From NCBI GenBank assembly GCA_964270895.1, contig OZ185437.1: a DNA stretch of 64,000 nucleotides. One strand, given 5' to 3'. Numbering within the stretch: the first letter of the stretch is position 1; each line of letters opens with the position of its first letter. This document shows positions 16,956 through 48,859 of the stretch, one piece after another. Both the position numbers and the translations under genes were made by a program. Below the pieces are notes generated by a model, which was not told the origin of the DNA, did no database searches, and was given only the letters and a program-made list of their open reading frames with translations. The DNA comes from Podarcis filfolensis. Its lineage: Eukaryota.

Positions 16956-17105
<150 letters not shown>

Positions 17106-17256
17106 TAATTTTATTATTATTTTGATTGGCATTGTGCCTCTTGTTTGTGTTTGCTAGGTATCATTCATATCATCACGCTGTTGCACGCCACCCAAAGTGG
17201 TGCAAAATTCCAGGGGTTCCAGGTGCTTATCCAGAGTGTCTTTATGAGATATGGTT

Positions 17257-17260
<4 letters not shown>

Positions 17261-17296
<36 letters not shown>
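17261..17296. repeat. (CA)18 microsatellite
   Basis: Direct reading of the sequence. Confidence 0.95.
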
Positions 17297-17299
<3 letters not shown>

Positions 17300-18074
17300 A
17301 TATTTGATGGAGGGCTCACAGCATTAACCCCCCCCCCCCGGGGTCTTCCTTCTTCCATAGCGAAGCCTTGGATTGCAGCAGAAATCAGGCATAGCTCTGT
17401 CTCCCAGCTGCCCGGCCTTCAGCCTTCTCCCACAACTCAGCTCTGGTCTTTGTCTTTCTAACTGCCAGGCAGTTGAGGGAAGGGAGGCATCCATTGGCTG
17501 TCTGGCACAGAGCCTCTTCCTTTGTTACCTTCATGGCCCATACTTGGAGGGCCATTACCTCAACAGGAAGCTAGCATGGATCTAGGAATTAGAATGGGAC
17601 TCAGGCATAGAGCCCACCCTCTAAACTCATAACAGCATTTGCCCCCCTACATAAATCCAGAACTGTCTTCACTGTGTTGCCTTTCCCCTGATATTTTTTT
17701 ATGTTAATAATGTCCAGTTTTATGGCGTGGATAAAAGGTTGTTTTATGCTTTTATTCTATACATTTGTCAATATGTGCTCATGTGTGTGTGATCTCTGTA
17801 GTTGATACAATGACAGAGTATCGTAGCAACTGCAGGCTTCGTGTAATGGTTTTGTCTGTCCTAGCCTTTCAGTCATGGAATGTTGTGTACAGCACACAGG
17901 CTGCTCTGGCAGGGTGTGCAGTTGTTGCAAAGTCTTTGAGATTTGCTGTTTTATAATTATGCATGTTGATAGTGATGTTTATGTCGAAAAATAACAGCAG
18001 GGTCAGTTAGACTTCACATGCCATTGTAGTTCCCATTGCGGGGTATTGTTAACCCCAATGGCTTATATAGAACT

Positions 18075-18198
18075 GGCATCCCCAAACTCGGCCCTCCTGA
18101 TGTTTTGGGACTACAACTCCCATCATCCCTAGCTAACGGGACCAGTGGTCAGGGATGATGGGAATGGTAGTCCCAAAACATCTGGAGAGCTGAGTTTG
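18075..18198. mobile_element. Palindromic hAT-type MITE, eroded
   Basis: ggactacaactcccatcatccct ... agggatgatgggaatggtagtcc arms, same family as 21947-22082 and 43919-44056. Confidence 0.65.
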
Positions 18199-18213
18199 TT
18201 TAACCAGAAAAGG

Positions 18214-18214
<1 letters not shown>

Positions 18215-18265
<51 letters not shown>

Positions 18266-18420
18266 TTATTTATACCTCATCTTCCCCAGCCAGAGCTGGG
18301 CTCAGGGCAGCTAACACCAATAAAATTACAGTAAAAACATAATAGGAAAAAAACAAAACAAAAAAATTAAAATACAGGGTAAAATGCAATTTAAAATGCA
18401 GCCTCATTTTAAAAGTAGCC
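18215..18420 (-). mobile_element. L2 LINE 3' end with (AAT)17 tail at 18215-18265
   Basis: The reverse complement resembles the + strand L2 end at 22230-22370 (gcc...ccagag...tataaata followed by a simple-repeat tail). Confidence 0.6.
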
Positions 18421-19939
18421 CAGTACTTATCAATAAAGGTGTGATCATTATTATTTTTATTTTAACTTGCAGACAGTATGCTTAATAACTTTCATCCTAA
18501 ATTTTTTTGGCTTTCTTGGTATACATTTAGCCCCCATGCCAGATTGCTAAAGTCAGGGGTTCCCCCCCCCCCAATCAGCAGGAGGGCACATAGTATTGTG
18601 CAAGACAGCTTACAATATATTTAAAAAGAATAAAAAATAAGTATAAATGTTACAACATGAACAGGGATCACTAAATACTTGAAAGCACAGTTGGGATGCT
18701 AATTATTCTTGCTTGTTCTCTTTCTTCACATAAGCATGGAGAATGACATCGTTTTCTGCTGCATCATGTGCTTGGATCAGGAATATATTGTATTTTATGC
18801 CAAAAAGGTTAGCACTATGTTTTCGCTTGGTAAATTACAGTACCATCCTAATCATGTCTACTCAGAGGTAAGCCCTACTGAATTAAGTGGGGCATACCTC
18901 CAGGTAAATTGGATTAGGATTGTAGCCTAAATAAAAGTAAAGTGTGACACAGCCCTCCAGTTCTATATCATTTGGACGAGGATTTGGAAATGAAGCCGTG
19001 GAATTCCTGCTAGGATACCAGGAAGTTGTTAATTGAGATTTGATCACTGGGGAACATTTTGCACACTCTCATTTACATAGTGGCACTCATGTCCTTTTCA
19101 AACTTTTTAAAACTACTGATGCAAAATAGTGGTGTCCTCCGTGCGTAGCTATGTACATCAGTGAGTCATTCATATTAGCTAGAGGTAAGCGTTACAAAGG
19201 TGACTCTTAAATTTTAAGCATGAATATAGATATTAATTATTAGTCTGATAAATAGCTTGACAGAGATTAGATTCGCCAAACATCTTTACGTTTTCCTATG
19301 CAAACATTCTATTACCTTGTAGAAGGGCAATAACAATTTTCTGTGAGACTAGGGCTTATTAGAGTATGTAGATGAAGGCACCAAATAGTCCCTTAATGTT
19401 GATATTCATCTCCTTTTAATGAGCAGTCCCAAACAAGCAAGTATACCGATAAGCATCAATAGTAATACTTATAATTGGGGTAATCACTTTTCTAAAATGT
19501 TAATGTGTGCAAATTTTTGGAAAGGCCAGATTTCCAGCTGATGATAAATATTCAGGACCAGCAATCAGCCACAGGGTATCTTTATTCTGTGGTTCAATTT
19601 CCCTATTTATTTCCACTATTTGTATGCAAAGCTTCCTGTAATTTATATGAAAAAGAGGTAATTTATTGATGATGCCAAATGAGTTTCTGAAGCTTATTTA
19701 TACAGAATGTGTTTTGAAAGGCTGCTGGTTTATAACACCTGCAGATGTTACGTCCTGGGCAGGATTCTGATATCAGTAACTTGACTATTGCTCTTACCTG
19801 CTATCCGCAAGGTTAGATCAAACCTTCTGACTTTGTGTAACAGTGGTCCATTCCAGTTGAAACATTAAGCCATAGTTTAGTGCTACGTGAAAGTGCAGAA
19901 CCTAGACTTCTGCTCTAGGGCATTGGAATTTGCTACCAC

Positions 19940-20620
19940 CAGTCTTAAAAAGGAGATTAGACAAGTTCATGGCTATCAATAACTACTCTGTCAGGCAACT
20001 GCCATCGGAACGAGAGGAGGAGGCGAGGCTCCACAATGATGCTGGAGAGGGGCCAAGCAGGGAGAGAGGCAGGTCTCCTGTTGGGGAAGAAAATCAGCGC
20101 AACACCAGGGATAGAGGGGGGCCAATGGGGGAAGCAGAGAGCAGGCTCCGTGACTCTTCACTGGACACCAGCGGGGAGAGCACAGGTCCTCCGCTACCCA
20201 CGCCCTCCCTGCGCAGAAGACTTCCGCGCAGGGAGAGTAGGAGGAGACTGGGCGTCAAACAACTTTTATGTTGGAAAAGGTTTAAGAAACGCCCACTGAC
20301 GGTTTCTGCCAGCGACTGAACAGCCACGGAGTGGATGGCTGTCCAGCGAGAAATGGTTTAACCAGCCAACCTAGCCCAGAGCGGCAGCTATTTACGCACA
20401 AGCAACCCCTAAAGCCATTACATACTCGTAATGATCACTGTATGCTACCTCCATGATCTGAGCTAGCATGCCACTGAATACCAGTTTCTGGGGAACAATA
20501 GAGGAAGAGGACTGCTACCTTTGTGTTCCACTTTTGGGCTTTCTTGGGCATCTGGTTGGGCGTTATGGAAAACAGGATGTTGGATCAGATAAGCCTTTGA
20601 TATGATCCAGCAGGGCTTTT
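19940..20620 (+). mobile_element. CR1 LINE 3' fragment split by a solo LTR
   Basis: ttaaaaaggagattagacaagttcatggctatcaat resumes after the LTR as taatgatcactgtatgctacctcc...tggatcagataagcc. Matches the reverse complement of the CR1 ends at 43795-44200 and 57193-57500. Confidence 0.6.
19989..20422 (+). mobile_element. Solo LTR, 434 bp, probably Gypsy-type
   Basis: TG...CA termini (tgtcagg...gccattaca) and a perfect 5-bp TSD tactc (19984-88 / 20423-27). Confidence 0.85.
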
Positions 20621-21946
20621 CTTACATGTTTTCCTTTACCTCTTGTCCTGTGGGACTGCAAGGAAAAATCAGAAGCATCCGCATGCTGTTTTAAACTATT
20701 CATGGTTTGAGCTTGCCTGTTGCGCTGAAACAGGTAACTAGGGGACAGGGAGATGGAGATGGACTGCTTTTCAGAATTTGCAAGGAAGTCTAATTTTTAA
20801 AAACACAATGGTCAATGGTTCTACTTCTGCTTATATTTTCAAAAGGAAAGAGCCTTAGCTAGAGTCCAAAATGGCAGTGATAGCTTTGCCATGAATCATG
20901 GCTAAAGAGTCATGTCTTAAATTAATCTGAAATATAATAAGCCTTTTTTTTTCAGCACATTACGCAACCAATTTAGGATCAGACATGAGGTGATAAATAT
21001 TATTATTTTTTAGAGAAAAAAAGGTTTCACTAAGTAAATACGAAACCAAATAAGTTAGGTTTGTGATGTGCATGTCATATTCATTTCTGTGATTACAAGG
21101 AAACACTGAAGATTAGTTTAGCATATTCTTTCTTAGTTTTGATGTGAATGTTTTTCTGTGCTCTCACTCTTTGTGCAACAATTGATTCACTGATGAAATG
21201 TTATCAGACGTACTTCCCTCGCCCACCATTCTGAATTGCTGCAATGAAAATGAATGGCAATAAATCACCATATCTTATGAACATAACCTGGACAAGTACT
21301 GATTTAATAAAAAATCTTGATTTTGTCTCTTGATTTGACCAGCAATTTTAATGTGCCAGTCCCAAGCAAGTTTACTTGAAAATCAGCTCACTGAAATCAA
21401 TGGCACTCACATCTTTTTAAAATGCTAAGTGTCAGGGCGCTTGACTGCACTGCCTGGTTTTATTGTTTTGTTTTTTTGTTTGCAGAAAAATACTTTGCTT
21501 TCAGATAGATCTATCAATACAAACAAACATCCCTCTAGAACTTAATAGCTTTTTAGCATCTCCGTGTTTGTGAAATAATTGCAGTGTGGGTAGCTTATAA
21601 TAATTTAATTGAGCAGCTAGCTACACAGAAAGTTGTGCAGAATGCACAGCCACAGCAAGCTCCTTTGACTGCTGCTAATGCGCTTGTGTGTATTGAACAA
21701 AGTAAGTTTTTCTGTGGATCAAGATGGAAGAAGAAATAGCATCAAAAGGCCTTTGTGAAGCAATTGAACATATGAACAAATTCTATCTACTTTTGTTATA
21801 TTTGCAAAGGTTTTGTTTTTGTTTTCACCTCGAGACATTTCTGTTGATATTTTCCCACTCCCTGTAGTAGGTGCAGTGGGGTGGTATTGGATTTGTCTCT
21901 AGAAGAGCAAAAAAGGCACTGGTACACATCATGCATCTGCTTGGAG

Positions 21947-22082
21947 CAGGCATAGGCAAACTAGGCCCTCCAGATGTTTTGGGACTATAACTCCCATCAT
22001 CCCTGACCACTGGTCCTGTTAGCTTGAGATGATGGGATTTGTAGTTCCAAAACATCAGGAGGGCCCAGTTTGCCTATACCTG
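21947..22082. mobile_element. Palindromic hAT-type MITE
   Basis: TIRs caggcataggcaaact / agtttgcctatacctg. 8-bp flanks gcttggag / gttttgag match at 6 of 8. Confidence 0.75.
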
Positions 22083-22229
22083 GTTTTGAGCAATCATATG
22101 CCATTAGTTGTGGTTTGGCCTCTTTCTTCTCAGTGGCTCATTCCGAGTTTTCTTCATGCCCACCTACCCTGGGTATGCAGTAAAGCACAGTATGGTTTCA
22201 TAATTGGCTGAATTGTTTGTTGTTTAGGG

Positions 22230-22371
22230 AAGTTTTTAATGACTGATGTTTTAATGTATTTTTAATCTTTTGTTGGAAGCCACCCAGAGTGGCTGGGGAA
22301 ACCCAGCCAGATGGGCGGGGTATAAATAATAAGTTGTTGTTGTTAATAAGTTGTTGTTGTTGTTGTTGTTT
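22230..22371 (+). mobile_element. L2 LINE 3' end with (TTG)n tail
   Basis: ggaagccacccagagtggctggggaaacccagccagatgggcggggtataaataataa followed by ttg repeats. Confidence 0.7.
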
Positions 22372-23852
22372 TGCTCTTAACCCAATCTCCTACCTTGAAA
22401 AATACCTGTATGGTTTGATCCACAGTGTATCTCCTTTGTTGTAAAGTTAATGAAGCTGTGGGTCTAGAAGATCATTGCTAGGATTCCCACTTCTTTATTC
22501 TGAATGTGCAACTACCTCTTTCCATTCTTTATCTTATATTAAGATATTAGGTTGCTGCTTAAGAGATAGGTGTGCTTCAGTAGCATTTTAACAAAACCTA
22601 TTCCAGATGCTTAAACCTTTTTCTTTCAAATGCAAAATGGTTTGTTGTATTTATTAAATACATGTACAGTCACCCCAAATCCAGCAAGAGTCACCCTTAC
22701 ACAAAGCACTGGAATATCCTGATGTTTCCCACTGTACAGCTGAAGGCTCTTACTCTGGCCTTCCTGTAAATTGAGCACACCCATATTTTGGGTAAGAAAA
22801 ACAAAATACGAAATGGACATACGATATCAGTGAACAGATGGGGAAACTGTCTTTGAAGAAGAGAATTGATAATAGCCTGATTTGCTAGGCATAGCAGTAC
22901 AAGTCTTTTTATGTTTCAGATGAATGACTATGGCTTAGAGTTTGCCAAAGGCACACCTAGAATCTTTATTTACCCATAGTAAAGGCATACATTCTATGTG
23001 CGTTGGTATTTTAATCAGATTGCACACCCCTAGCTACACTGTGACACCAGTTTTTAAGACCCAAGGGTTTGTAATGTAAACATTTAGCACAGTGTTTACT
23101 GTGATGTTCATTGTCTCAAAATGGTGAGGGGGAAGAGGAAAGAATATTGCATTTTTGTTTTATGCAATAATTCAGTCTCGGATTGATTGCAATAATGATG
23201 CTGCCTTTAGTGCTAGTTTTGATTGACAGCTATTGTTTTGTGGAAGAAATTAGCCATATCATCAGGTTATATTCTGTGCTACAAAGAATCATTAGCTGTA
23301 GAAAAGCCCATTTAGATTAATGGAAGAATTAATTAAATTCTTGAGTCAAAAGAGCAACAAACTCTACAAGGAGTTCATTAAAGTTATTCTCAAATTTTCA
23401 TCAGTCATACAAACAAAATGATCTGATAGAGGAAACCAAGAATTCACACACAAAATGTGACTTTAAATCTAGTTTTCTAATACATTTCCAAAATTTTATC
23501 TGCTTTTATTTTAACTAGTTCAAAACAAGTAGTATAAGAATCTCTCAGTTTCTAGCAAAAACTCATGTAGTACCTATACTGTAGTTGTTCCTAGCCTGTG
23601 AACAACTTTTTGAAGTACTTCAGCTGTACATGATTGTGCTACAAGTTGTATGTTAAGTGCTTTTTTATCTATCTGTTTCTTAAACAAGTTTCAATTTCAA
23701 GGACTAAATGCTTAAGGAGTTCCAACTGCAGTATGGGTAAAATTGCATTCTGATGGCGATAAGACAGCATTATCTTTTTACTCCCTCCCTAACTCCAAAG
23801 CAAGTTTGTTAACACGAGTGTCCCCAATCTGTTTTCATACGCCATACGTAAC

Positions 23853-23997
23853 CAGTGCTTTTTTCCCTTAAAAACAACAACGTTTAGGGGTACTCTCATT
23901 TTCCTACTCATAATGAAATACTGCCCCTCAATGAGGCCAAACCTAGATTCACAAAATGTTTAGGGGTATGCGTACCCCTGCGCCCCCCAAAGCACTG
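23853..23997. mobile_element. hAT-type MITE, 145 bp
   Basis: TIRs cagtgcttt / aaagcactg. 8-bp TSD tacgtaac / tccgtaac matches at 7 of 8. Confidence 0.75.
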
Positions 23998-24109
23998 TCC
24001 GTAACTTATATCTATGTCCTGAATAAACTATGGTCACAAATAAGTTTTGTGTCTGGATTTTCAGTTTTTGAAATATGGCCACCCTAGACAATGGTCTAGC
24101 ATATCCTTT

Positions 24110-27100
24110 TAGATAAATTTATTGTCATTGTCCGTATATACACAGTATACACAACAACGAAAATCAAACACCCCCCCAAAGACCGGGTTCACATACACAT
24201 TTACACGTATCTCCAACACTCTCATCCTATTCAGACATAATCTATAAAACATAACATAATCCAGAATATAACATAACCTATTTAAAGGCATAACATAACC
24301 TAAAACCTATCTCATTCCTTCCTACTCCCTGCTTGCTATTTCTTGCAACTGGCCCTGAGATCATTATTTAGTGCAATCAGAGCTCTTGGATAGAAACTAT
24401 TCAGAAGGCGTGTGGTTCGTGTTTTCATTGTCCTATATCTTCTGCCCGAAGGCAACAGTTCAAAGAAGTTGTGAGCAGGATGGGTGGGATCTCTCAGGAT
24501 ATTGTGTGACTTCTTCAAAGTGCGAGACGTGAAGATCTCATCCAGGGTTGGTAGTTGGAGCCCAATAACATTCTGGGCAATTTTAATTATTCTCTGTAAA
24601 GCTTTTTTATCCGTTTCGGAGCTGCTCCCATACCACGATAATACACTATAGGTTAAGACACTCTCGATGGTACTGTGATAATAGGACAGAAGTAGGTGCT
24701 GAGATAGATTCAGTCCCCTGAGCATTCTCAGGAAATACAACCTCCCCTGCACCTTCCTCACAACCATATTAATATTTGCAGTCCATGAGAGGTCCTCAGA
24801 GATATAAATGCCCAGGTATTTAAAACTACCAACCCTCTCCACCTCCTCGCCATTTATGTACAATGGTAAAAATACACTTTTCTTTCTCCTAAAGTCAATT
24901 ATGAGTTCTTTGGTTTTTTTGGTGTTAAGCATAAGATTGTTTTCTTTACACCATTGAATTAACCCCTGTACTTCTTTCCTATAAGCAGTCTCATTGTTCT
25001 CACTAATGAGCCCCACCACTGTTGTATCATCCGCAAATTTGATGATTGTGTTGGACTTATACAGTGGGGTGCAATCAAATGTGTACAGGGAATAGAGAAA
25101 GGGACTTAACACACATCCCTGAGGGGCTCCTGTGCTTAATACTAGAGTAGAAGAATAGTAAGGTCCCATTCTCACTGTCTGCGGCCTATCAGTCAAGAAA
25201 TTCCTTACCCACAGACAGATCTTCTGATGTATACCCAAATTGGTCATTTTAAGAAATAACCTGTCTGGCAGAATTGTATTGAAGGCAGAACTGTAGTCCA
25301 CGAACAACAGCCTTGCGTAGGTTCCCTGTCGTTCTAGATGACTCAGTACAGTATGGACAGCGATGGAAATAGCATCATCAGTAGATCTGTTTCTTCTGTA
25401 TGCAAACTGGAACGGGTCTAGAGTGGATGGAAGACCAGCCTTAATATGATCTAGCACCAATCTCTCAAAACATTTCATAACAACAGATGTTAGAGCTATT
25501 GGTCTATAGTCATTGAGAGATACCACCACTGACTGCTTGGGGACTGGCACTATAATCGATGTCTTCAGGCAGGTAGGGACAGAACCCTGCAACAGGGATA
25601 GGTTAAAAATGTCCGTAAATACCCCAGCTAATTCTGCAGCGCAGTCCCTAATAACCCGTCCCATAATTCCATCCGGTCCAGCTGCCTTCCTAATGTTAAT
25701 GCTCCGAAAGGCACGTTGTACGTCAGAGGTCTGTAATAAAAATGGTTGTCTATCAGTAGTAGTTTCTGATGATGTGCTGGTAGCCAATGCTGTAGTGGCG
25801 GTAGTTCCAGTTCCCACCTCAAAGCGACTAAAAAATTGATTCAGTTGATCAGCCAGGTGCGCACTGCTACTGGCCAGTTCGTTTTTAATATTTTGCCCTG
25901 TGATTTGTCGCAGGCCTTGCCATACTCGACGAGGGTCGGAGCTCTCAAAATGTTTTTCAATCCTCCGGCAGTACATAGCTTTGGCATTCCTAATGCCCTT
26001 TTTCAATTTGGCTCTGGCTTCTCTATACTGTTGCGCATCACCAGAATGAAAAGCAGCATTTCTTGCCTTTAACAGAAGATACACATCCCTGTTTAGCCAG
26101 GGCTTGTTGTTAGGGAACACCCGTATTTGTTTGGTGGTAGTGACAACATCAATGCAGCTTTTAACGTAGAACAGTACTGTCGAAGCGTATGTGTCCACAT
26201 TATTCTCCACAAAAAGCGACCACTCGGTGCTCCGAAAGCAGTCTTGAAGTTGCTCAGATGCACCTACTGGCCACACTCGTATCTCTCTAGTTGATGGTCT
26301 AATTCTGCATACGAGAGGTCTATATGATGGTATCATAAGTAAAGATATGTGGTCTGACTGCCCCAAATTGGGCAAGGGCTTGGTCTTATATCCATGCATG
26401 ATGTTACTATATACTCGGTCCAGGGTATTTCCCCCCCTAGTGGGACAATCAACATACTGGTGGAACTTAGGAAGCACAGTCCTTAAATCGGCTCGGTTAA
26501 AATCACCAGCAACCACAAATGCTCCATCCGGGTGGGCCCGCTGCTGTTTGCTAATAGCAGTTAGCAGGTGGCCCATAGCTGTAGTAGTGTTTGCATCGGG
26601 AGGTATATACACCGCTGTTATTATAACAACATTAAACTCACGTGGCAAATAAAAAGGGCGGCACTTCACCACTAGGTACTCCAAGTCAGGAGAGCAATGC
26701 GTGTCCATTTGTTTGATGTCCGAGCTCCAGTTGTTATTTATATAAACGCAAATTCCTCCTCCTCTGCTCTTCCCGGATTCAGCGGTTCTATCCGCTCTAA
26801 TTACTGAGCGTCCTTCTAGCTGCAGAAGTCCCTGTGGAAAGGAGGGATCCAGCCACGTCTCTAAAAGGACCATAACACAGCAGTCCCGGATACTTTTCTG
26901 CCGAGAGGTAATAAGCTCCAACTCCTCTACCTTGTTAGGTAAGGATCTCACATTTGATACAAGGAGACTTGGCAATGCAGGCTTGTGGGGATTTTTACCT
27001 AACCTCACTCGTAGTCCAGCCCTGCAACCCCTCTTCTGCTTACGCCCTCTCCGTTTTCTTTTCTTTCTGGCAAGGAGAGCAAGGGGAGTATCCCAAGAAT

Positions 27101-27349
27101 GTGCAAGATATGGAGGCTCTCTGATAAGCTCAGCTGGAATGTTATAGGTTGAGACCTCCTGGCTGCAACCTTCTCCTCTGCCGATACTTAAGAGCTCTTG
27201 ACGACTATAAATTTCTTGTGCCTGAGTATTCACAGTCCATAGCAGCAACAAGTTCACAAATAAAAATAAAACACAAATCACTGAATACCGGTCTTCGGAG
27301 TGCCGAGCCGCTGCAAGTGCTTGCGCCGCCATCTTAACTCCAAGTTACA
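24110..27349 (-). mobile_element. Apparently full-length Rex1/Babar-type non-LTR retrotransposon, antisense to CSMD1
   Basis: Single intact EN-RT ORF. The 3' end on the minus strand reads gacaatgacaataaatttatcta, a Rex1-like terminus. Flanked on both sides by L2 RT sequence. No TSD found. Confidence 0.85.
24336..27332 (-). CDS. Rex1/Babar-type APE endonuclease-reverse transcriptase polyprotein, 998 aa, uninterrupted
   Basis: APE motifs SNVRSL, LETW, AVYIP, GDFN, LDRVY, SDH. RT motifs KAAGPDG, YRPIALTS, QFAYR, FVDYSSAFNTI, PQGCVLSP, KFADD, KYLG. C-terminus LLPSGRRYR...RLLNSFYP is typical of Rex1/Babar. Confidence 0.95.
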   Translation of the reverse strand: MAAQALAAARHSEDRYSVICVLFLFVNLLLLWTVNTQAQEIYSRQELLSIGRGEGCSQEVSTYNIPAELIREPPYLAHSWDTPLALLARKKRKRRGRKQKRGCRAGLRVRLGKNPHKPALPSLLVSNVRSLPNKVEELELITSRQKSIRDCCVMVLLETWLDPSFPQGLLQLEGRSVIRADRTAESGKSRGGGICVYINNNWSSDIKQMDTHCSPDLEYLVVKCRPFYLPREFNVVIITAVYIPPDANTTTAMGHLLTAISKQQRAHPDGAFVVAGDFNRADLRTVLPKFHQYVDCPTRGGNTLDRVYSNIMHGYKTKPLPNLGQSDHISLLMIPSYRPLVCRIRPSTREIRVWPVGASEQLQDCFRSTEWSLFVENNVDTYASTVLFYVKSCIDVVTTTKQIRVFPNNKPWLNRDVYLLLKARNAAFHSGDAQQYREARAKLKKGIRNAKAMYCRRIEKHFESSDPRRVWQGLRQITGQNIKNELASSSAHLADQLNQFFSRFEVGTGTTATTALATSTSSETTTDRQPFLLQTSDVQRAFRSINIRKAAGPDGIMGRVIRDCAAELAGVFTDIFNLSLLQGSVPTCLKTSIIVPVPKQSVVVSLNDYRPIALTSVVMKCFERLVLDHIKAGLPSTLDPFQFAYRRNRSTDDAISIAVHTVLSHLERQGTYARLLFVDYSSAFNTILPDRLFLKMTNLGIHQKICLWVRNFLTDRPQTVRMGPYYSSTLVLSTGAPQGCVLSPFLYSLYTFDCTPLYKSNTIIKFADDTTVVGLISENNETAYRKEVQGLIQWCKENNLMLNTKKTKELIIDFRRKKSVFLPLYINGEEVERVGSFKYLGIYISEDLSWTANINMVVRKVQGRLYFLRMLRGLNLSQHLLLSYYHSTIESVLTYSVLSWYGSSSETDKKALQRIIKIAQNVIGLQLPTLDEIFTSRTLKKSHNILRDPTHPAHNFFELLPSGRRYRTMKTRTTRLLNSFYPRALIALNNDLRASCKK

Positions 27350-27775
27350 CACCTGCAGATGTGAAGAAGAAGAAGAAGAACTGTGTGTCATCACCATATT
27401 GCTGACAACATACTCCAAAGCTCCAGATGACCCCACTCAGCAGTTTCACATAGATGTTAAACAGCAGTTGGAGAGGGGGAGACTCAAACCCTGAGCAACC
27501 TTGTATTGAATGCTCCATGGGTCAGCACACTCCCAAGCATCACCCTCTAGAAATGACTATCCAAGTAGGACCACAACTACCACAAAGTGGTGCCACCCAC
27601 CCCTAACTTGGACAGCCACTCCAGAAGGATAACTTGGTTGATGGTATTGAAAGCCGCTGAGAGGTCGAGGAGAATTAACAAGGACATATTTCCCCTGTCT
27701 CTCTCCCAACAGAGGTCATCATATGGGACAACCATAGCAGTTTCTGTGCTAAAAGCAGGTCTAACCCCCAAATGA
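27350..27775 (-). mobile_element. Decayed L2 LINE RT fragment; a further remnant lies at about 24082-24106 beyond the Rex1 insertion
   Basis: Minus-strand translation gives FSTETA, LLILLDLSAAFNTI and LFNIYVKLLSGVIWSFGVCCQQYGDDTQF, with stops and frameshifts between them. Confidence 0.85.
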
Positions 27776-28357
27776 AATGGACATGACAAAAATTTCTACA
27801 TTAGGGCATGCTGTTGGAAACATGAACTTGTTATTCAGATTTTACTGGGTCAAGTTAACTCCCCAATCATTGGGATTCTTAACTTTGTGCTGCATTATGT
27901 ATGGAAACGCATGCCAGGATTTGTGATGTAGACAATCATGACAGAAGAAGATATTTCCAGCTCACAGTGGCAATCAAAGGAATCTATTAAAATCTCCTAG
28001 ATTCTGTATGCAGGGAAGGAAGGTAGTAATAGCCTACCTCTGGCTTCTGTTATTGATACATTGATCTTCCTTTCTCCTTACCTGTTTGAGTATTCCTTTG
28101 AGAAAAAGTAATTGCCAACCATAGCAGTATTGACTGTCCCTGTTGGACAGCAAGAGGAAATCTTACCCGTCATTCTGATGTTGACTTTACAGAAAAGGAA
28201 TTGTGCAAGTTCAGAACGCATTAAGGAGTGTTATCAAGGTGATTTTAAAGACCCAAGTCTATATTTGCGGTTTTAGTCTTCTTTCTTCACACTGCCTCTT
28301 GAACTTCTTGCCACACCCTTGATTTGTTATCGCTGTCCCCCCACTGTCCTCATTGTC

Positions 28358-28656
28358 AATGGTGAGCTCCCATTGCTGTGCCCCAGCTTCTGCCAACCTA
28401 GCAGTTTGAAAGCATACCAGTGCAAGTAGATAAATAGGTACCACTGCAACAGGAAGGTAAACAGTGTTTCTGTGTGCTCTGGAATCACGGTCTTTCGTGT
28501 GCCAGAAGCAGTTTAGTCATGCTGGCTACATGACCCGGAAAGCAGTCTGCGGACAAACGCCGGCTCCCTGGCGTGAAAAGTGAGATGAGCGCCACACCCC
28601 ATTGGCACCTTTGACTGCACTTAACTGCCCAGGGGTCCTTTACCTTTTACATTTAC
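28358..28656 (+). mobile_element. Sauria SINE, 5'-truncated, second tail subtype
   Basis: Core gccaacctagcagtttgaaagc...gtgcaagtagataaataggtacc. Tail cctttgactgcacttaactgcccaggggtcctttaccttt. Confidence 0.88.
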
Positions 28657-28979
28657 TATAAGACTAGGTGCCAGCAGCAGCCAGGAGTGCATTCATCTGG
28701 GATATCTGCCACCCTCTTTTCCTGTGAAGCTACACTAGCCAACCACTGAAAGCCCTAGGCAATTCACTATTACATTATTCTAATGTACTGTAAGAGGGAC
28801 TGTCTTTGAAGACAGTTCAGAAACATTAGTTGGTCCGGAACAGAAGTAGCCAATACTGTATAGGGCCCTTCAGATGTTCTTAGACTACATCTCCATCAAT
28901 GTCCCCAGCCAACATAGCCAATGGTGAGGAATGTTGGAAGTTGTACACCAAAATCAGGGATGTTAGGACAGAACATATC

Positions 28980-29070
28980 ACTGATATTGTACTGTCTACA
29001 CTGGTTACTAGTTTGTTTCAAGGTTAAATTTAAAGTGCTTATTCTTACCATTAAACTTCTGAATAGAGGT
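28980..29070 (+). mobile_element. Short decayed L2 ORF2 C-terminal fragment
   Basis: Translates LHWLLVCFKVKFKVLILTIKLLN, resembling the L2 LHWLPV...FK.L.L..KAL motif. Confidence 0.6.
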
Positions 29071-30616
29071 AAGTGCCATCTGCTCTGTAGACTTAGAATT
29101 AAAATAATTTTGAGTTGGTGCTGCTGCAGATCTTGGTGCCACAGTCTCTTTCCCAAGCTTTGTGGTTCTGTCCCAAGTACTCTCAAATTAATAGATACCT
29201 GCAGGGTGGGAGAGGCAAGACAGACAATCTCGGCTTCCACCATCCAGGTATTTCTGCCCTCCTACACACCAGGATACTTGCCTGTTTCCAAGGGACCAGA
29301 TGTGTACTGGAGGTGGCTGAATGTGCCATCTTTGAAAACAATGAAGACAATGGGAAGAATTCAAAATAAAATTTCTGCTTGCCAGACGGTATGACCTCCC
29401 CTCTGCCACCTAGGGCTTCCCTAGCTGGATGGAGGATCGAACACGTGAATAGTTTGTACACCAGGTTCCCTGTTCTGATCCAAGAGCTGGACTAGTGTAT
29501 GCCTAATTCTTAAATAAATCAGAAAATCCTGTGTATTATCTTTTTTTCAGTAGGGGAGTTGGGACTGGATTTAGTTCCCCCATGAACCCCCTTTCCCCCA
29601 CAAACAGCTGATTCTAGCTTTTCAGAGTCTTATCTTCTTGATGCAGGCCCAGCTGCTTAGTGCACACTGTTATTTCTGATCCACCTTATTCTATTATATA
29701 AATAAAGTGCTGAGAGACGTGTCTCTGCTCCTTTTTCACTGGGATACTGGATGGTGAAAATAAGATATAATTTAAACCTCAGCCACAGTTCCAGTGGCTT
29801 GAATGACAGGTGAATACTTAGATAAGACATAATTATTATAAACTCTAACTTTTGGCAATAAATGTTGTGTTCTTGGCAGAGATATACAGGTGTAAAATCA
29901 AGGGTTGCGTGGTTTCTCTCTGAAGAAGAATTGAGGCAGAGAAGCATTACATTTCAGTGGATTCCGAATCAGTTCTAAGGCAGTATTTCTAACCTCCAGT
30001 CTATGGTGTTGGATGTTTTGGCCTGCTAGCTTTCACCAGAGGCTTTTTGCTGCAGCCCCGCCCCCAGCACAGTGAATAAACTCCTACTACCTGGAAAAGG
30101 GTGTTACAGGGATGGGGCAGAACAGGGCTGGCCCATTCCGTTCTCTAGAACATCTGGGTCCTGGAGCTGGTACAGCAAAACAAACAAACAACCCCCCCTT
30201 CCACTTTTTGTCTTAACTGGTTCAAGCTGGCAGAACTTTGAGTATGGCCGTGGTTCCTCTACTCTGATTCTCACTCGTTTGCTCTATAAATGCTCTAAAT
30301 TGCTCTATAAATGTATATTTCCTTCTCTATCTTTTTTTTTTTAAAATTTAAGTAGGGCTTATAGCTCAAGTCTAACAAGTGGTATGTAGTACAGATGTAT
30401 TTTTTTCCTCCCCCAATACTTTTTATTTGTTTTGAACTCCCCCGTGGAAACGTATTGGATCACAATTTCATTTCACATTTATTAAGGGTTTACTTCTGTT
30501 CACATTCATGAGTTAATTCTCATACTTGCACAGAATTTGTTCTCTATGCCAAGGAATAAGGCTATTCGCTGCAAACTGAGACTTCATAGAAATTAAGAGC
30601 AATATTTAATTATACA

Positions 30617-30660
<44 letters not shown>

Positions 30661-30665
30661 TGTGT
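30617..30665. repeat. (TC)13(TG)11 compound microsatellite
   Basis: Direct reading of the sequence. Confidence 0.95.
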
Positions 30666-31645
30666 ATCACATACTAATATATATCACATTTCTTTTTTGT
30701 GAAACATAAGAAGCAAAGCTTTTTTGAGACTGGATCAAACAGCCTAGGGAATTTTATTTTGGTTAGTTGACAGTGTCGTGTAATGAATGCTAATATACTT
30801 TCAGAAATGTTAACTTGATTATAGTGCTGTGAGCTTTCTTGTCATTGATGGCAGTGATGCCTGGAAAATATTGGAGGTCACTGTAATGACGTGCCTGGAT
30901 GTATGTCTCGTGCCAGAGCTGGAATGGCAAAAGTATTTAACAAGCAGGAACTGGGATGAGATCACTGGGAGAGTGATCAGTATTGACATTAATGAGTTTT
31001 ATGTCCTATGCCAAAAGAGTTAGCTGACCTGTGAAGAGCATGCAGTAAGCAATTTCCTGTACAAGAGAGGCATGCTACCCTTGAAAACAGTACTTGATAT
31101 TCATAAGCTGTGAATGAGAACTACAGCATGTAAAGCATGTGGTCTAAAGAATACCTTGTCTCTGGCTCTGCAGCATGGCAGATAGAGCTCTGCCAACCTT
31201 TTCCTTTAAGCCCCCCTAAGTCTTCAGTAAGACATCTTCATGCCACACTATGTCCTGTTCAAGAGACTTGCACATGCATGTGTACACACACACACACACT
31301 TGCAGTGTGCATTATTGAACATGAATTCCTTCTGTGAGTGTGAATGAATTTCTAGATTTGCCACACCATTATATTTTGAAGCTAATTTTACTCAACAGTG
31401 AATATATAAAATGTGACCTATTACCGTTGTTTCATATGTATATACACGCCTCTGTGTGTGACTGTGTGTGTATATGTCTCTCTCTGTGCAATATATACAC
31501 ACATACATACTACTGATGGCTTTATGTATCTGTTTGTGTATTTATATTGAACTGTTCTTCCTTTCTGTCCTGCTGCTATCATTTCTTCCCTTGTGTTCAC
31601 TTAGATTATGGCATGCTTAAGTCAGGGACTTTAACGTCTTTTTAA

Positions 31646-31909
<264 letters not shown>

Positions 31910-46283: not shown

Positions 46284-47479
46284 ACCCTCTCCCCACCAAA
46301 CAACTGATCTGCAGATTTTAGCAGTTTTCAGATAACTTCCTTGCACATGTTTCTTTGTGTTGAAGCCCCTGTGTTCAATTATTTGCCTGCAGTAGTTATT
46401 CAAATATATATCACAGTTCACAATGTTGGTTGGCCTGCCCTTTGTGCACCTGGGTATATAAATTTATAAAGCGGTACTGTGTTGCCCTATTTATATTTTA
46501 AATGTAGTTTATAACTCAGCCACATATTTCAGTTCTTTCACTCTGAATCACCTCAAATTACTTTGAAATTTTGCACATTATACATAGAGGGAAAAGAGCG
46601 AATTATTCTGTGCCTTGCCTAGAATTTCAATTAATTATACTGAAATGCTATAATTAAAATAACTTTCTCACGTCCGTAAATGGATATCCTTGACAAAAGC
46701 AGAACAATGAAAATGACCAATATCATCTTCCTTTGTCATGCAAAAGAGCCAGATGGGAACCTGCATACTAAGTTGCATCATGCCTAGACATCAAATCAAA
46801 TACAACTTTTTTCAAAGCTACTAGTAGTGACTATATTATTTGTATTGTGGTTTGTTTTTTTAAGTGTATGAATAAAATGATCTATAGGTTATCGGTGATT
46901 CTCAAACTTTTTTCCGTGGATTACACTTTCAGAATAAAAATTTGCTCATGCCATACCCCATTTTTAATTGATAAGAAATAAATTGGAAAACAAAAAGAAA
47001 TAACTAGCACAGGGGAGAGTAAGTAGCAGAGGAGGCAGAAGCAAGTGATGCACTTCTCAGAGGACCTGTCTGTTACATCCAGCTTCCTATCTGTAAAAGC
47101 ACCACACCCAGAAAGTGAAAAACAACAACACACCTGTAGTTGTTCATCCTATCCATCCTATCTAACTTCCAGATGTTTTTAGAGTCTCTCTTGGAAAACA
47201 TCCACTTTGGTCTTTTGATAATTGGTCTTCATTTTTATAGTAATTACCAAAGGATTTTAGGAGGCGCTATACAACTTTCCGTGTTAAAGACATTATTGCT
47301 GTGACAGCTGCATACAGATGAGCTAAAATATTTTTATCACCTATTTTGAAATGAGGGGAGAAACATTGAAAACCTGACAGATGTGAAACCATGTTGTTTA
47401 TTATAAATTAAAAAGCAGTGTCAGGCCTTTTGTTTGTTTTTCCCATGTCTATAATAGCCTATTTGTACTGGGGAAGCAA

Positions 47480-48859
47480 GTTTGGAAAACTCAGCAGTGG
47501 CCAGAGGATTGGAGAAGATCAGTCTACATCCCAATCCCAAAGAAGGGCAGTGCTAAAGAATGCTCCAACTACCGCACAATTGCACTCATTTCACACGCTA
47601 GCAAGGTTATGCTTAAAATTCTACAAGGAAGGCTCAAGCAGTATGTGGACCGAGAACTCCCAGCAGTGCAAGCTGGATTTAGAAGAGGCAGAGGAACCAG
47701 AGACCAAATTGCAAACATGCGCTGGATTATGGAGAAAGCTAGAGAGTTCCAGAAAGACATCTACTTCTGCTTCATTGACTATGCAAAAGCCTTTGACTGT
47801 GTCGACCACAGCAAACTATGGCAAGTTCTTAAAGAAATGGGAGTGCCTGATCACCTCATCTGTCTCCTGAGAAATCTCTATGTGGGACAAGAAGCTACAG
47901 TTAGAACTGGATATGGAACTGGATATGGTTCAAAATTGGGAAAGGAGTACGACAAGGCTATATATTGTCTCCCTGGTTATTTAACTTATATGCAGAATTC
48001 ATCATGCAAAAGGCTGGGCTGGATGAATCCCTAGCCGGAATTAAGATTGCTGGAAGAAATATCAACAACCTCAGATATGCAGATGACACAACCTTGATGG
48101 AAGAAAGTGAGGAGGAATTAAAGAACCTTTTATTGAGGGTGAAAGAGGAGAGCGCAAAATATGGTCTGAAGCTCAACATCAAAAAAAGGAAGATCATGGC
48201 CACTGGTCCCATCACCTCCTGGCAAATAGAAGGGGAAGAAATGGAGGCAGTGAGAGATTTTACTTTCTTGGGCTCCATGATCACTGCAGATGGTGACAGC
48301 AGCCACGAAATTAAGAGACGCCTGCTTCTTGGGAGGAAAGCAATGACCAACCTAGACAGCATCTTAAAAAGTAGAGACATCACCTTGCCAACAAAGGTCC
48401 GTATAGTTAAAGCTATGGTTTTCCCAGTAGTGATGTATGGAAGTGAGAGCTGGACCATAAAGAAGGCTGATCGCCGAAGAATTGATGCTTTTGAATTATG
48501 GTGCTGGAGGAGACTCTTGAGAGTCCCATGGACTGCAAGAAGATCAAACCTCTCCATTCTGAAGGAAATCAGCCCTGAGTGCTCACTGGAAGGACAGATC
48601 GTGAAGCTGAGGCTCCAATACTTTGGCCACCTCATGAGAAGAGAAGACTCCCTGGAAAAGACCCTGATGTTGGGAAAGATGGAGGGCACAAGGAGAAGGG
48701 GACAACAGAGGACGAGATGGTTGGATAGTGTCTTCGAAGCTACAAACATGAGTCTGACCAAACTGCGGGAGGCAGTGGAAGACAGGAGTGCCTGGCGTGC
48801 TCTGGTCCATGGGGTCACGAAGAGTCGGACACGACTAAACGACTAAACAACAACAAACC
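47480..48859 (+). mobile_element. BovB (RTE) LINE, 5'-truncated, 1.38 kb, RT C-terminal half with one frame switch
   Basis: ORFs 47609-48034 (QAGFRRGRGTRDQI, CFIDYAKAFDCVDH) and 47965-48846 (NNLRYADDTTL, FTFLGS). Tail gactaaacgactaaacaacaacaa. 9-bp TSD gggaagcaa (47471-79 / 48860-68). Confidence 0.96.

Follow-up and report, generated by a model that had tools for sequence, protein, structure and literature searches.

The question raised by this locus is whether a LINE with an unbroken reading frame, lying in an intron of the lizard Podarcis filfolensis, is a recent and active member of its genome and whether its lineage reached lizards from an aquatic host. The element lies in a stretch of 64,000 nucleotides of contig OZ185437.1 (assembly GCA_964270895.1), which is referred to throughout as the window. 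As explained below, it is most probably a complete member of a young Rex1-type family of non-LTR retrotransposons in Podarcis that is active now or was very recently; the copy would have been inserted antisense in a CSMD-type intron by target-primed reverse transcription (TPRT). As retrotransposons go, it is an ordinary young one, of the already known Rex1 type.

The element contains a single ORF (24336..27332; like all parts of the element, on the minus strand), which encodes 998 amino acids from ATG to TAG with zero stops or frameshifts inside, as the first-pass annotation had claimed; no other ORF of at least 300 amino acids was found in the 64-kb window. Residues 1–119 form an N-terminal leader (26976..27332), whose layout matches that of teleost relatives: it opens with MAAQ and has a hydrophobic stretch, the motif YSRQELL and, at residues 89–101, a cluster of basic residues. 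An MAA start is present in 27 of 99 near-full-length relatives. The leader is followed by an AP-endonuclease domain of the EEP fold, spanning approximately residues 120–330 (26343..26975), which was assigned from Pfam, catalytic residues and a structural model. Here, Exo_endo_phos is matched at residues 153–328 with 26.2 bits (cut-off 24.5), and all of the APE-type residues were found (N127, E158, Y242, D277, N279, D305, D327 and H328) and are unchanged across a 13-sequence family alignment. Neither the endonuclease part by itself nor a 13-sequence profile of it matched any PDB sequence, but a fold search did match: the domain model (pLDDT 89) was paired by Foldseek with the human L1 ORF2p endonuclease and TRAS1 EN (E 2e-10 to 4e-8, TM 0.62–0.70).

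The reverse transcriptase (RT) domain spans residues 597–843 (24804..25544; RVT_1, E 2.5e-32), has motifs 1–7 located, including FADD at residues 766–769, and can be aligned to R2 and L1 ORF2p chains. C-terminal to it is PF09004 (formerly DUF1891; residues 850–891, 24660..24785), which is annotated on nearly all relatives too. Every residue of the APE and RT catalytic motifs, which had earlier been described as complete, was located in the ORF. Read from its open frame, the copy is intact, with endonuclease and RT both encoded.

The first-pass annotation had placed the element at 24110–27349 and called it a Rex1/Babar LINE with many undecayed CpGs, and each of these statements stood up to comparison. 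The limits are nearly exact. Three sibling copies (L003–L005) are 98.7–98.8% identical to it from 24110 to 27334/27343, and an empty-site-like joint in another species, described below, takes out 24107–27347, the inserted segment comprising the full-length copy and its junction nucleotides. The interval 24110–27349 holds 78 CpG sites at an observed/expected ratio of 0.50, compared with 0.28 window-wide and 0.28 and 0.19 in the two flanks.

Assignment to the Rex1/Babar type is based on the single ORF, the lack of an ORF1, the Rex1 3′ block and the (ATCT)n tail of siblings. These agree with the published descriptions, in which Rex1 “universally lacked ORF1” (PMC13343379) and has a 3′ UTR with a conserved end and, behind it, an oligonucleotide repeat whose length varies (PMC6274825). 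The named close homologues come from teleosts and share this architecture, among them proteins of Xiphophorus and Oryzias, the taxa in which Rex1 was described; the tree holds no labelled Repbase or Dfam reference for Rex1, CR1 or L2.

The 3′ UTR is 226 nt long, from the ORF stop to the end of the element (24110..24335). Folding of five elements places a terminal hairpin at 24125..24160, with the same fold in 5/5 elements and z-scores of −1.35 to −2.9. The base stem, UCGUUGU/ACAAUGA, is invariant, with all seven of its pairs retained in 5/5 (one as U-G), and the upper stem varies in sequence with its pairing always kept. The terminal block is also present in elements L002, L006 (Mugilogobius), L007 (Paramisgurnus) and L008. 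Beyond the hairpin (24107..24123) are AATAAA at 24118–24123, one ATCT-type unit reaching to 24110, and AAA at 24107–24109. Sibling L004 has (ATCT)n at the same place as the single unit of the window copy. A tail of one unit only might impair the window copy as a source element.

The insertion site is in an intron of the plus strand (17098–31763), bounded by the end of a CUB domain exon (16990..17097, with a GT donor at 17098) and the start of a Sushi domain exon (31764..31880, with an AG acceptor at 31762–31763), the exon pieces having been searched separately. The host is a CSMD-type gene (CSMD1, CSMD2 or CSMD3), and the antisense orientation noted earlier is confirmed. For the host gene, this is one more antisense intronic insertion without sign of effect. 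The left flank (23792..24106) is a repeat of very high copy number, and the element inserted either into it or next to it; its depth in summed contigs is 4e4–1.7e5 as compared with ~10 in single-copy flank. The right flank (27348..27780, minus strand) belongs to another LINE family: it is an older RT fragment, broken and seen as stop-interrupted RT-like pieces (27350–27780), with a contig depth of 4e2–2.7e3. The remaining RT-like match in the window, at 47438–48483, is also broken and has 24–29% identity.

In organism D, a sister species, one contig with a depth of 5.2 joins 24106 to 27348 without the element, and this joint holds five letters (ACTGC) in its place. It is likely the orthologous empty site, seen in a single contig sited between two repeats. 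No clear target-site duplication was found at the element junctions; a small target deletion accompanying the insertion is more likely, because the ACTGC of the empty form is missing from the filled form. The suggestion that the insertion might be polymorphic is upheld in part: the element-free joint, in one contig of another species, is evidence between species. Unique right flank is 1.2–1.4% divergent to organisms B and D.

The family of the window copy is young and has multiple copies in four lizard species, as seen in Logan contigs. A Podarcis muralis protein, P0001, is 98% identical to the window ORF, and its cluster of 27 members includes Podarcis lilfordi, the proteins of the two species being at least 98% alike. 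A second protein, P0132, is identical to the window ORF at 989 of 998 positions and is encoded by three sibling contigs, on four Logan contigs. With a single-copy flank depth of 9–11 as the yardstick, the window's species would have ~30–40 full-length and ~95 3′-end copies, figures that come from rough contig depth, since Logan depth ratios are rough and differ from true copy numbers. On the same footing, contig depth declines from 998 at the 3′ end to 406 and 319 at the 5′ end in organism A, from ~720 to 73 in organism B, and from ~3000, with 944 in the 3′ part, to 127 at the 5′ end in organism D. This 3′-to-5′ fall matches frequent 5′ truncation. The alternative of a domesticated host gene was rejected, as the sequence is multi-copy, many copies are 5′-truncated and it is absent from the organism D joint.

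Further support for recent activity came from the pattern of substitution. The window copy differs from L003–L005 by 27 synonymous and 9 non-synonymous changes (S 692, N 2302; binomial p 6e-11), dN/dS relative to the majority sequences is ~0.1, and 12 of 13 private changes among those listed (there are at least 13) are synonymous. As the differences are mostly synonymous, the copy would derive from a selected, active sublineage and be little decayed. From the majority sequence of its own species it is separated by 26 differences in ~3.2 kb, or ~0.8% of sites. Read naively as decay, this value would correspond to millions of years, and it is the one point that favors an old, fixed and inactive relic, whose ORF would be open either by chance or because other copies have converted it. 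Such a relic is highly improbable: the mostly synonymous differences are unlike neutral decay and show no excess of non-synonymous changes or frameshifts, CpG o/e is twice the background, and the element-free joint comes from a species with a flank divergence as low as that given above. For the same reason, dating the insertion by its divergence to the majority was rejected, the differences being sublineage history and not decay.

An intact appearance could also come from assembly or polishing, since repeats of 30–100 near-identical copies are prone to being mis-polished toward the family majority, and a collapsed or consensus-polished repeat might merely look whole. Almost no credence can be given to this, as the copy's private differences set it apart from the majority sequences of three species and as its junctions are unique on both sides and lie within a few bases of the empty-site joint.

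The RNA evidence comes from organism D, where reads cover 24120–24939 at a depth of 6–10 with the first mate on the plus strand and are near zero on the 5′ third; this coverage, from a sister-species run, is limited to 0.8 kb at the 3′ end and follows the gradient of DNA copies. A first mate on the plus strand indicates sense RNA of a minus-strand element. At the family level, then, the activity proposed earlier looks real, with many near-identical copies, low dN/dS and sense RNA reads in a sister species. The insertion itself is probably recent, as had been thought, given the intact ORF, the CpG o/e and the element-free joint in organism D.

In the most probable reading, that of a young and active family, the encoded endonuclease would nick the target, and the RT would recognize its own RNA by the hairpin and tail at the 3′ end and copy it where the nick was made, as do other “stringent” LINEs of the CR1 group. 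The insertion would be later than the split from organism D, leaving little time for decay, and the window copy could itself serve as a source element despite its one-unit tail. The majority sequences of organisms A, B and D diverge about as much as their flanks, which fits co-divergence within the genus, and the family may have been inherited vertically at least since the sampled Podarcis species last shared an ancestor.

How the lineage reached Podarcis is a separate matter. The first-pass annotation had proposed transfer from an aquatic lineage, that is, that the family entered from an aquatic donor such as a fish, either directly or with a parasite or virus as carrier, and multiplied afterwards. 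In two trees the Podarcis clade does lie inside a teleost-dominated set of Rex1 lineages, on a long, bare stem branch of 0.33–0.34 changes per site, and a single clade made up of the other 40 ingroup rows is rejected by an AU test (p 1.4e-4, for a group defined after the tree was seen). In the best 120 matches of either protein search, no squamate protein was named other than those of Podarcis. In addition, a single layer of near-identical sequence dominates the contigs, and no older fragment of the family was found in the 64-kb window. Rex1 is also the CR1-group LINE most often transferred, with cases in sea snakes, hydrophiines and Pogona (PMC7846101, PMC8872380, PMC13343379).

What speaks against transfer is that no donor-like sequence was found. 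The nearest relatives outside Podarcis, namely P0003 (ERR6050763), P0004 (GCA_002003405.1) and P0021 (SRR32739766), have 61–65% protein and 65–67% DNA identity, so that similarity to a distant host far beyond host divergence is not seen, and the best named teleost matches have at most 58% protein identity. The published Rex1 transfers into snakes were based on 75–87% DNA identity to fish (PMC7846101, PMC8872380). Path lengths from Podarcis to teleost lineages are ~1.0, the same distance that separates teleost lineages within that clade, which fits ancient paralogous lineages with differential loss; ancient paralogy accounts for the tree incongruence equally well. Rex LINEs are moreover resident in squamates, being reported from all squamate genomes sampled (PMC6050309) and making up 1.1–1.4% of elapid genomes, and a 2026 survey reports zero CR1-group transfers within amniotes (PMC13343379). 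Because the majority sequences co-diverge with Podarcis species, any transfer would be older than the genus-level splits sampled. Nesting among teleost Rex1 stands beside low identity and resident squamate Rex LINEs; the data do not support an aquatic origin, and we regard it as unlikely.

A comparison of dS with fish Rex1 was dropped, as dS is saturated at 45–58% protein identity and such a test cannot decide on transfer at these distances. L009, a fish-type Rex1 under a human gut metagenome record name and apparently not human DNA, was left out of the comparisons. The flank of the P0004 contig has no repeat in common with the window and a CpG o/e of 0.55, a weak hint that its host may not be a lizard.

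The 5′ end of the element is very short. From the insertion boundary to the ATG there is a leader of 15 nt (27333..27347), of which the last 2 nt are common to all siblings and the remainder is copy-specific and missing in the empty-site form. The leader of L003 is related (GGAGTT-type), and those of L004 and L005 are unrelated. By DNA comparison, the start codon lies inside AAGATGGCGGCG (27324..27335), a putative YY1 site of TISU-like form. The ATGGCGGCGC start is kept in the DNA of the window copy, L003, the two named teleost elements L006 (Mugilogobius) and L007 (Paramisgurnus), and L008, and the sequence upstream is unrelated. TISU elements lie no more than ~30 nt downstream of the transcription start, are bound by YY1 and drive translation from a very short leader. 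Their full consensus is SAASATGGCGGC, and with its ATG start this type is represented by TAAGATGGCGGC in the window copy and by CAAGATGGCGGC in sibling L003. The core of the YY1/TISU-like start motif is ATGGCGGC. YY1 binding and transcription depend on TISU positions 5–12 (PMC2518114).

It is tentatively suggested, from these motif comparisons, that the entire 5′ control region of this Rex1 sublineage might be the 8–12-nt YY1/TISU-type motif that holds the start codon, with transcription starting a few nucleotides upstream in flanking DNA and translation proceeding without scanning from the ~15-nt leader. Such a promoter would explain why copies have no common sequence upstream of the ATG, how a copy-specific 13-nt leader could be carried along by the insertion, and how Rex1 is able to do without an ORF1 or a long 5′ UTR. 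If so, reliance on one ubiquitous, conserved factor could help explain why Rex1 crosses species frequently as compared with other CR1-group LINEs, and such crossings might include an old entry into lacertids.

Few studies have dealt with active LINEs of amniotes beyond L1, CR1, L2 and BovB. With its tens of intact copies, a Rex1 family in so well-sampled a lizard genus provides insertion polymorphisms for Podarcis population genetics, as well as a natural system for the transcription and translation of a LINE that lacks ORF1 and has almost no 5′ UTR. The transfer question matters only if presence and absence across lacertids prove patchy.

The closest known system is teleost Rex1/Babar (Volff et al. 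2000, via PMC6274825). It, too, encodes an AP endonuclease and then an RT in one ORF, its copies are likewise frequently 5′-truncated, and its conserved 3′ UTR end is followed by a short tandem repeat. Teleost proteins have the same N-terminal layout and are 45–58% identical over 84–100% of the length, and the Mugilogobius and Paramisgurnus elements carry the same terminal block as the window copy (TTTCGTTGT, loop, ACAATGACAATAAA). The differences are the lacertid host, an ATCT tail unit instead of ATTCT, an upper hairpin stem that is longer here (16 bp), and a distance of ~1 change per site between the Podarcis lineage and every named fish sequence.

Rex1-Snek of sea snakes and the hydrophiine and Pogona Rex1 (PMC7846101, PMC8872380) are also young squamate Rex1 families. 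As here, the snake families have few full-length and many 5′-truncated, near-identical copies with transcripts detected. Unlike the Podarcis element, for which no relative with more than 67% DNA identity was found outside the genus, they have 75–87% DNA identity to fish and are absent from close terrestrial relatives, and the case for their transfer is built on these two observations.

In stringent-type LINEs of the CR1 group, such as eel UnaL2 and zebrafish ZfL2, a 3′ stem-loop and a short tandem repeat are thought to be recognized by the RT, and there is no poly(A). The 3′ stem-loop with its tandem repeat and the lack of poly(A) are the likeness to the present element; the difference is that these belong to clade L2, and to our knowledge a requirement for hairpin and tail has been demonstrated for no Rex1. 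Human L1 has an ORF1, a 5′ UTR of ~900 nt with a YY1 site in it, and a poly(A) tail. The Podarcis element resembles it (ORF2p structures 9hdr and 8sxt) in pairing an EEP-fold endonuclease with an RT, in TPRT and in having a YY1-type motif near the 5′ end, but its YY1-like motif overlaps the ATG and its leader measures ~15 nt.

The Rex1-type element contains a single ORF of 998 codons at 24336–27332 (−), and the ORF scan of the 64-kb window found no other ORF of at least 300 codons. On the same strand, Pfam places an Exo_endo_phos endonuclease at residues 153–328, barely over the curated cut-off, a reverse transcriptase (RT) at residues 597–843 (E 2.5e-32) and PF09004 at residues 850–891. The functional residues of an AP-type LINE endonuclease (APE) are complete (N127, E158, Y242, D277, N279, D305, D327 and H328), and are invariant in an alignment of the ORF with twelve relatives. 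A structure model of the endonuclease domain (pLDDT 89, pTM 0.89) matches the human L1 ORF2p and TRAS1 endonucleases by structure comparison; sequence-only searches of the PDB with the endonuclease part gave zero matches. The RT motifs are present, including FADD at residues 766–769, and the RT can be aligned to R2 and L1 ORF2p chains. The observed/expected CpG ratio is 0.50 in the element, versus 0.28 in the window and 0.19–0.28 in the flanks. These results bear out the unbroken ORF, the full set of APE and RT catalytic motifs and the many undecayed CpGs described in the first-pass annotation, as well as its statement that other LINEs in the window are broken: damaged RT pieces lie at 27350–27780 and 47418–48846. 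The latter is a remnant of a different LINE RT, with 24–29% identity to the Rex1 protein and overlapping ORFs of 150–293 aa on both strands.

The N-terminal 119 residues comprise a hydrophobic stretch, a YSRQ-type motif and a basic cluster. As this layout is common to teleost relatives, the leader is a conserved part of the protein. The ORF starts with ATGGCGGCGC, and over about its first 30 nt there is DNA-level conservation between the lizard copies (the window copy and L003, a sibling copy on a Logan contig) and three related elements, L006 (Mugilogobius), L007 (Paramisgurnus) and L008, despite a protein identity of only ~52–54%. Upstream of the start there is no conservation between these lizard copies and L006–L008. 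All copies and relatives compared retain GCG GCG at the start, a pair of rare alanine codons with CpG. The MAA start occurs in 27 of 99 near-full-length relatives only, and is thus a sublineage trait rather than one general to Rex1. The start codon is embedded at 27324–27335 (−) in the YY1/TISU-like motif ATGGCGGC, which equals positions 5–12 of the TISU element. YY1 binds at these positions, and both transcription and accurate translation when the leader is very short depend on them (PMC2518114). The ATGGCGGC motif could combine promoter and translation start.

The ends of the element were defined using sibling copies and a probable empty site. Three sibling copies on Logan contigs from other runs (L003–L005) encode a protein identical at 989 of 998 residues, and have 98.7–98.8% DNA identity to the window from 24110 to 27334–27343. 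The four copies have unrelated sequence beyond the 2 bases preceding the ATG, and at the 3′ end every copy has an identical terminal block; L004 then runs on into (ATCT)n, and the window copy into a single unit and AAA. In organism D, a coded lizard species, 24106 and 27348 are linked on one contig by five other letters and, together with the copy ends, this identifies the inserted segment as 24107–27347. The insertion brought a 15-nt leader, 13 nt of which the empty form lacks, and probably deleted five letters of the target; no target-site duplication was seen at the boundaries. The host gene agrees with the antisense intronic position proposed earlier. Exon pieces searched individually show that a CUB-domain exon (+) ends at 17097 in front of a GT donor and that a Sushi-domain exon (+) starts after the AG at 31762–31763. 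As both exons are on the plus strand and the element is on the minus strand, it lies antisense within an intron of a CUB-Sushi gene.

Both immediate neighbors are repeats. On the left, 23792–24106 (to about 24119) has a summed contig depth of 4e4–1.7e5, versus ~10 for unique DNA. Its depth is high in all three species (A, B and D), it has RNA reads on both strands, and there are internal break points near 23882, 23945, 23978–23988 and 24045. On the right, 27350–27780 (−) is a broken RT fragment of a different LINE family, with LLDLSAAFNTI and GDDTQ motifs, several stops and roughly 1e2 copies at ≥90% identity. The unique left flank (23300–23791) is covered in a second organism A sample and has no contig of ≥90% identity in B or D, unlike the right flank, which is covered in all three organisms. 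A lineage-specific indel could explain this gap, as could an effect of the filter.

The unique right flank diverges by 1.2% from B, 1.4% from D and 0.6% from the second A sample. The element-free joint in D has a depth of 5.2, about half the single-copy depth, and is likely orthologous to the window site because both breakpoints match the element ends. If so, the insertion postdates the A–D split. Neither a junction nor an empty-site contig was among those listed for the second A sample.

The best protein match, at 98% identity, is from Podarcis muralis; its 27-member cluster also includes P. lilfordi, and the stretch is present in four coded organisms from nine studies (Logan runs). Depths of these collapsed contigs are rough and are not copy numbers; unique flank depth is 9–11. 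In organism A, the best holder and probably the species of the window, depth is 998 for the 3′ part and 406 and 319 for the 5′ end. The corresponding values are about 720 and 73 in B, and 944 and 127 in D. Read roughly, these depths correspond in A to ~95 copies with a 3′ end and ~30–40 full-length copies; full-length copies are fewer in B and D. Of the differences between the ORF and L003–L005, 27 are synonymous and 9 non-synonymous (692 and 2302 sites), a dN/dS of ~0.1 (binomial p 6e-11). At 13 listed positions the window copy departs from the majority sequences of all three organisms (A, B and D), and 12 of these private changes are synonymous (per-contig counts allow at most ~3 more). Since the differences are mostly synonymous, the copy stems from a distinct sublineage on which selection still acted shortly before the insertion, and it has decayed very little since. 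The 0.8% distance to its own species' majority was rejected as a copy age, as the differences reflect sublineage history. The potentially active source element of the first-pass annotation is upheld at the family level, by tens of near-identical copies and the low dN/dS. The Podarcis family looks active, and the window copy is real, intact and, as also proposed, very probably a recent insertion, given the D joint, the little decay and the synonymous bias.

RNA is consistent with the DNA copy gradient. In organism D, raw RNA reads from ~12% of one run reach a depth of 6–10 over 24120–24939, carry D's own variants and have their first mate almost exclusively on the plus strand. In most stranded libraries this denotes RNA of the minus strand, which is the sense strand of the element. 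Depth over the 5′ two thirds is 0–3. Organism D therefore has sense transcripts containing 3′ parts; as RNA coverage parallels the DNA copy gradient, it does not demonstrate full length.

Trees were built with FastTree (117 rows) and IQ-TREE (49 rows). In both, Podarcis and the nearest non-Podarcis relative proteins (P0021, P0004 and P0003; 61–65% identity) form a fully supported clade, which is sister to a Mugilogobius-containing group and nested in further lineages that are teleost wherever named. An AU test rejected the other 40 ingroup rows as one clade (p 1.4e-4), a group picked after viewing the tree. This incongruence would fit a transfer into the Podarcis lineage that is old or whose donor is unsampled, but such a transfer is unlikely. 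Several ancient Rex1 lineages are known to coexist within one fish genome, and teleost lineages of that clade are as far from each other in path length as they are from Podarcis (~1.0). Outside Podarcis, protein searches (5.8 billion proteins) found nothing above 65% protein or 67% DNA identity. The earlier idea of an aquatic donor, read as recent transfer out of a sampled lineage, lacks support. Between A, B and D, the family's majority sequences diverge about as much as the flanks do, which places the family in the common ancestor of these organisms. Rex LINEs are resident in all squamates sampled (PMC6050309), and comprise 1.1–1.4% of elapid genomes (PMC8872380). The Rex1 transfers into snakes that have been published are based on 75–87% DNA identity to fish and absence in close relatives (PMC7846101; PMC8872380), whereas Podarcis Rex1 has at most 67% to the non-Podarcis relatives found.

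Several Rex1 pairs lie very close together although their teleost hosts belong to distant orders (Cirrhinus–Denticeps, 0.16, and Prochilodus–Channa, 0.22 changes per site), in agreement with the frequent fish-to-fish transfer reported in the literature. Separately, L009, a fish-type Rex1 element with a protein identical to the related protein P0007, comes from a record labelled human gut metagenome. Its source is probably dietary fish DNA, and it was left out of all comparisons.

The Rex1/Babar assignment holds, as the family has these published Rex1 traits: the AP endonuclease precedes the RT and is frequently missing from 5′-truncated copies, the 3′ UTR terminates in a conserved stretch with an oligonucleotide repeat behind it (PMC6274825), and ORF1 is absent (PMC13343379). 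The 3′ terminal block consists of TTTCGTTGT, a variable loop and ACAATGACAATAAA, followed by a 4–5-nt repeat. A hairpin at 24125–24160 (−) has the same fold in all five elements compared, two of the other four being from named teleosts. Its seven basal pairs (UCGUUGU/ACAAUGA) are kept in all five, and the upper stem varies in sequence and length with pairing always retained. AATAAA and a short repeat follow the hairpin, an arrangement repeated in the four other elements. The (ATCT)n tail (L004, 3292–3313; window, 24107–24117) is an ATAG microsatellite. A squamate survey associated no TE with ATAG expansion and linked Rex LINEs to AATAG (PMC6050309); the Podarcis family may be a seed of ATAG repeats. 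The window element is a further example of an already known Rex1 type, and its 3′ terminal block is common to the teleost Mugilogobius and Paramisgurnus elements and two further relatives.
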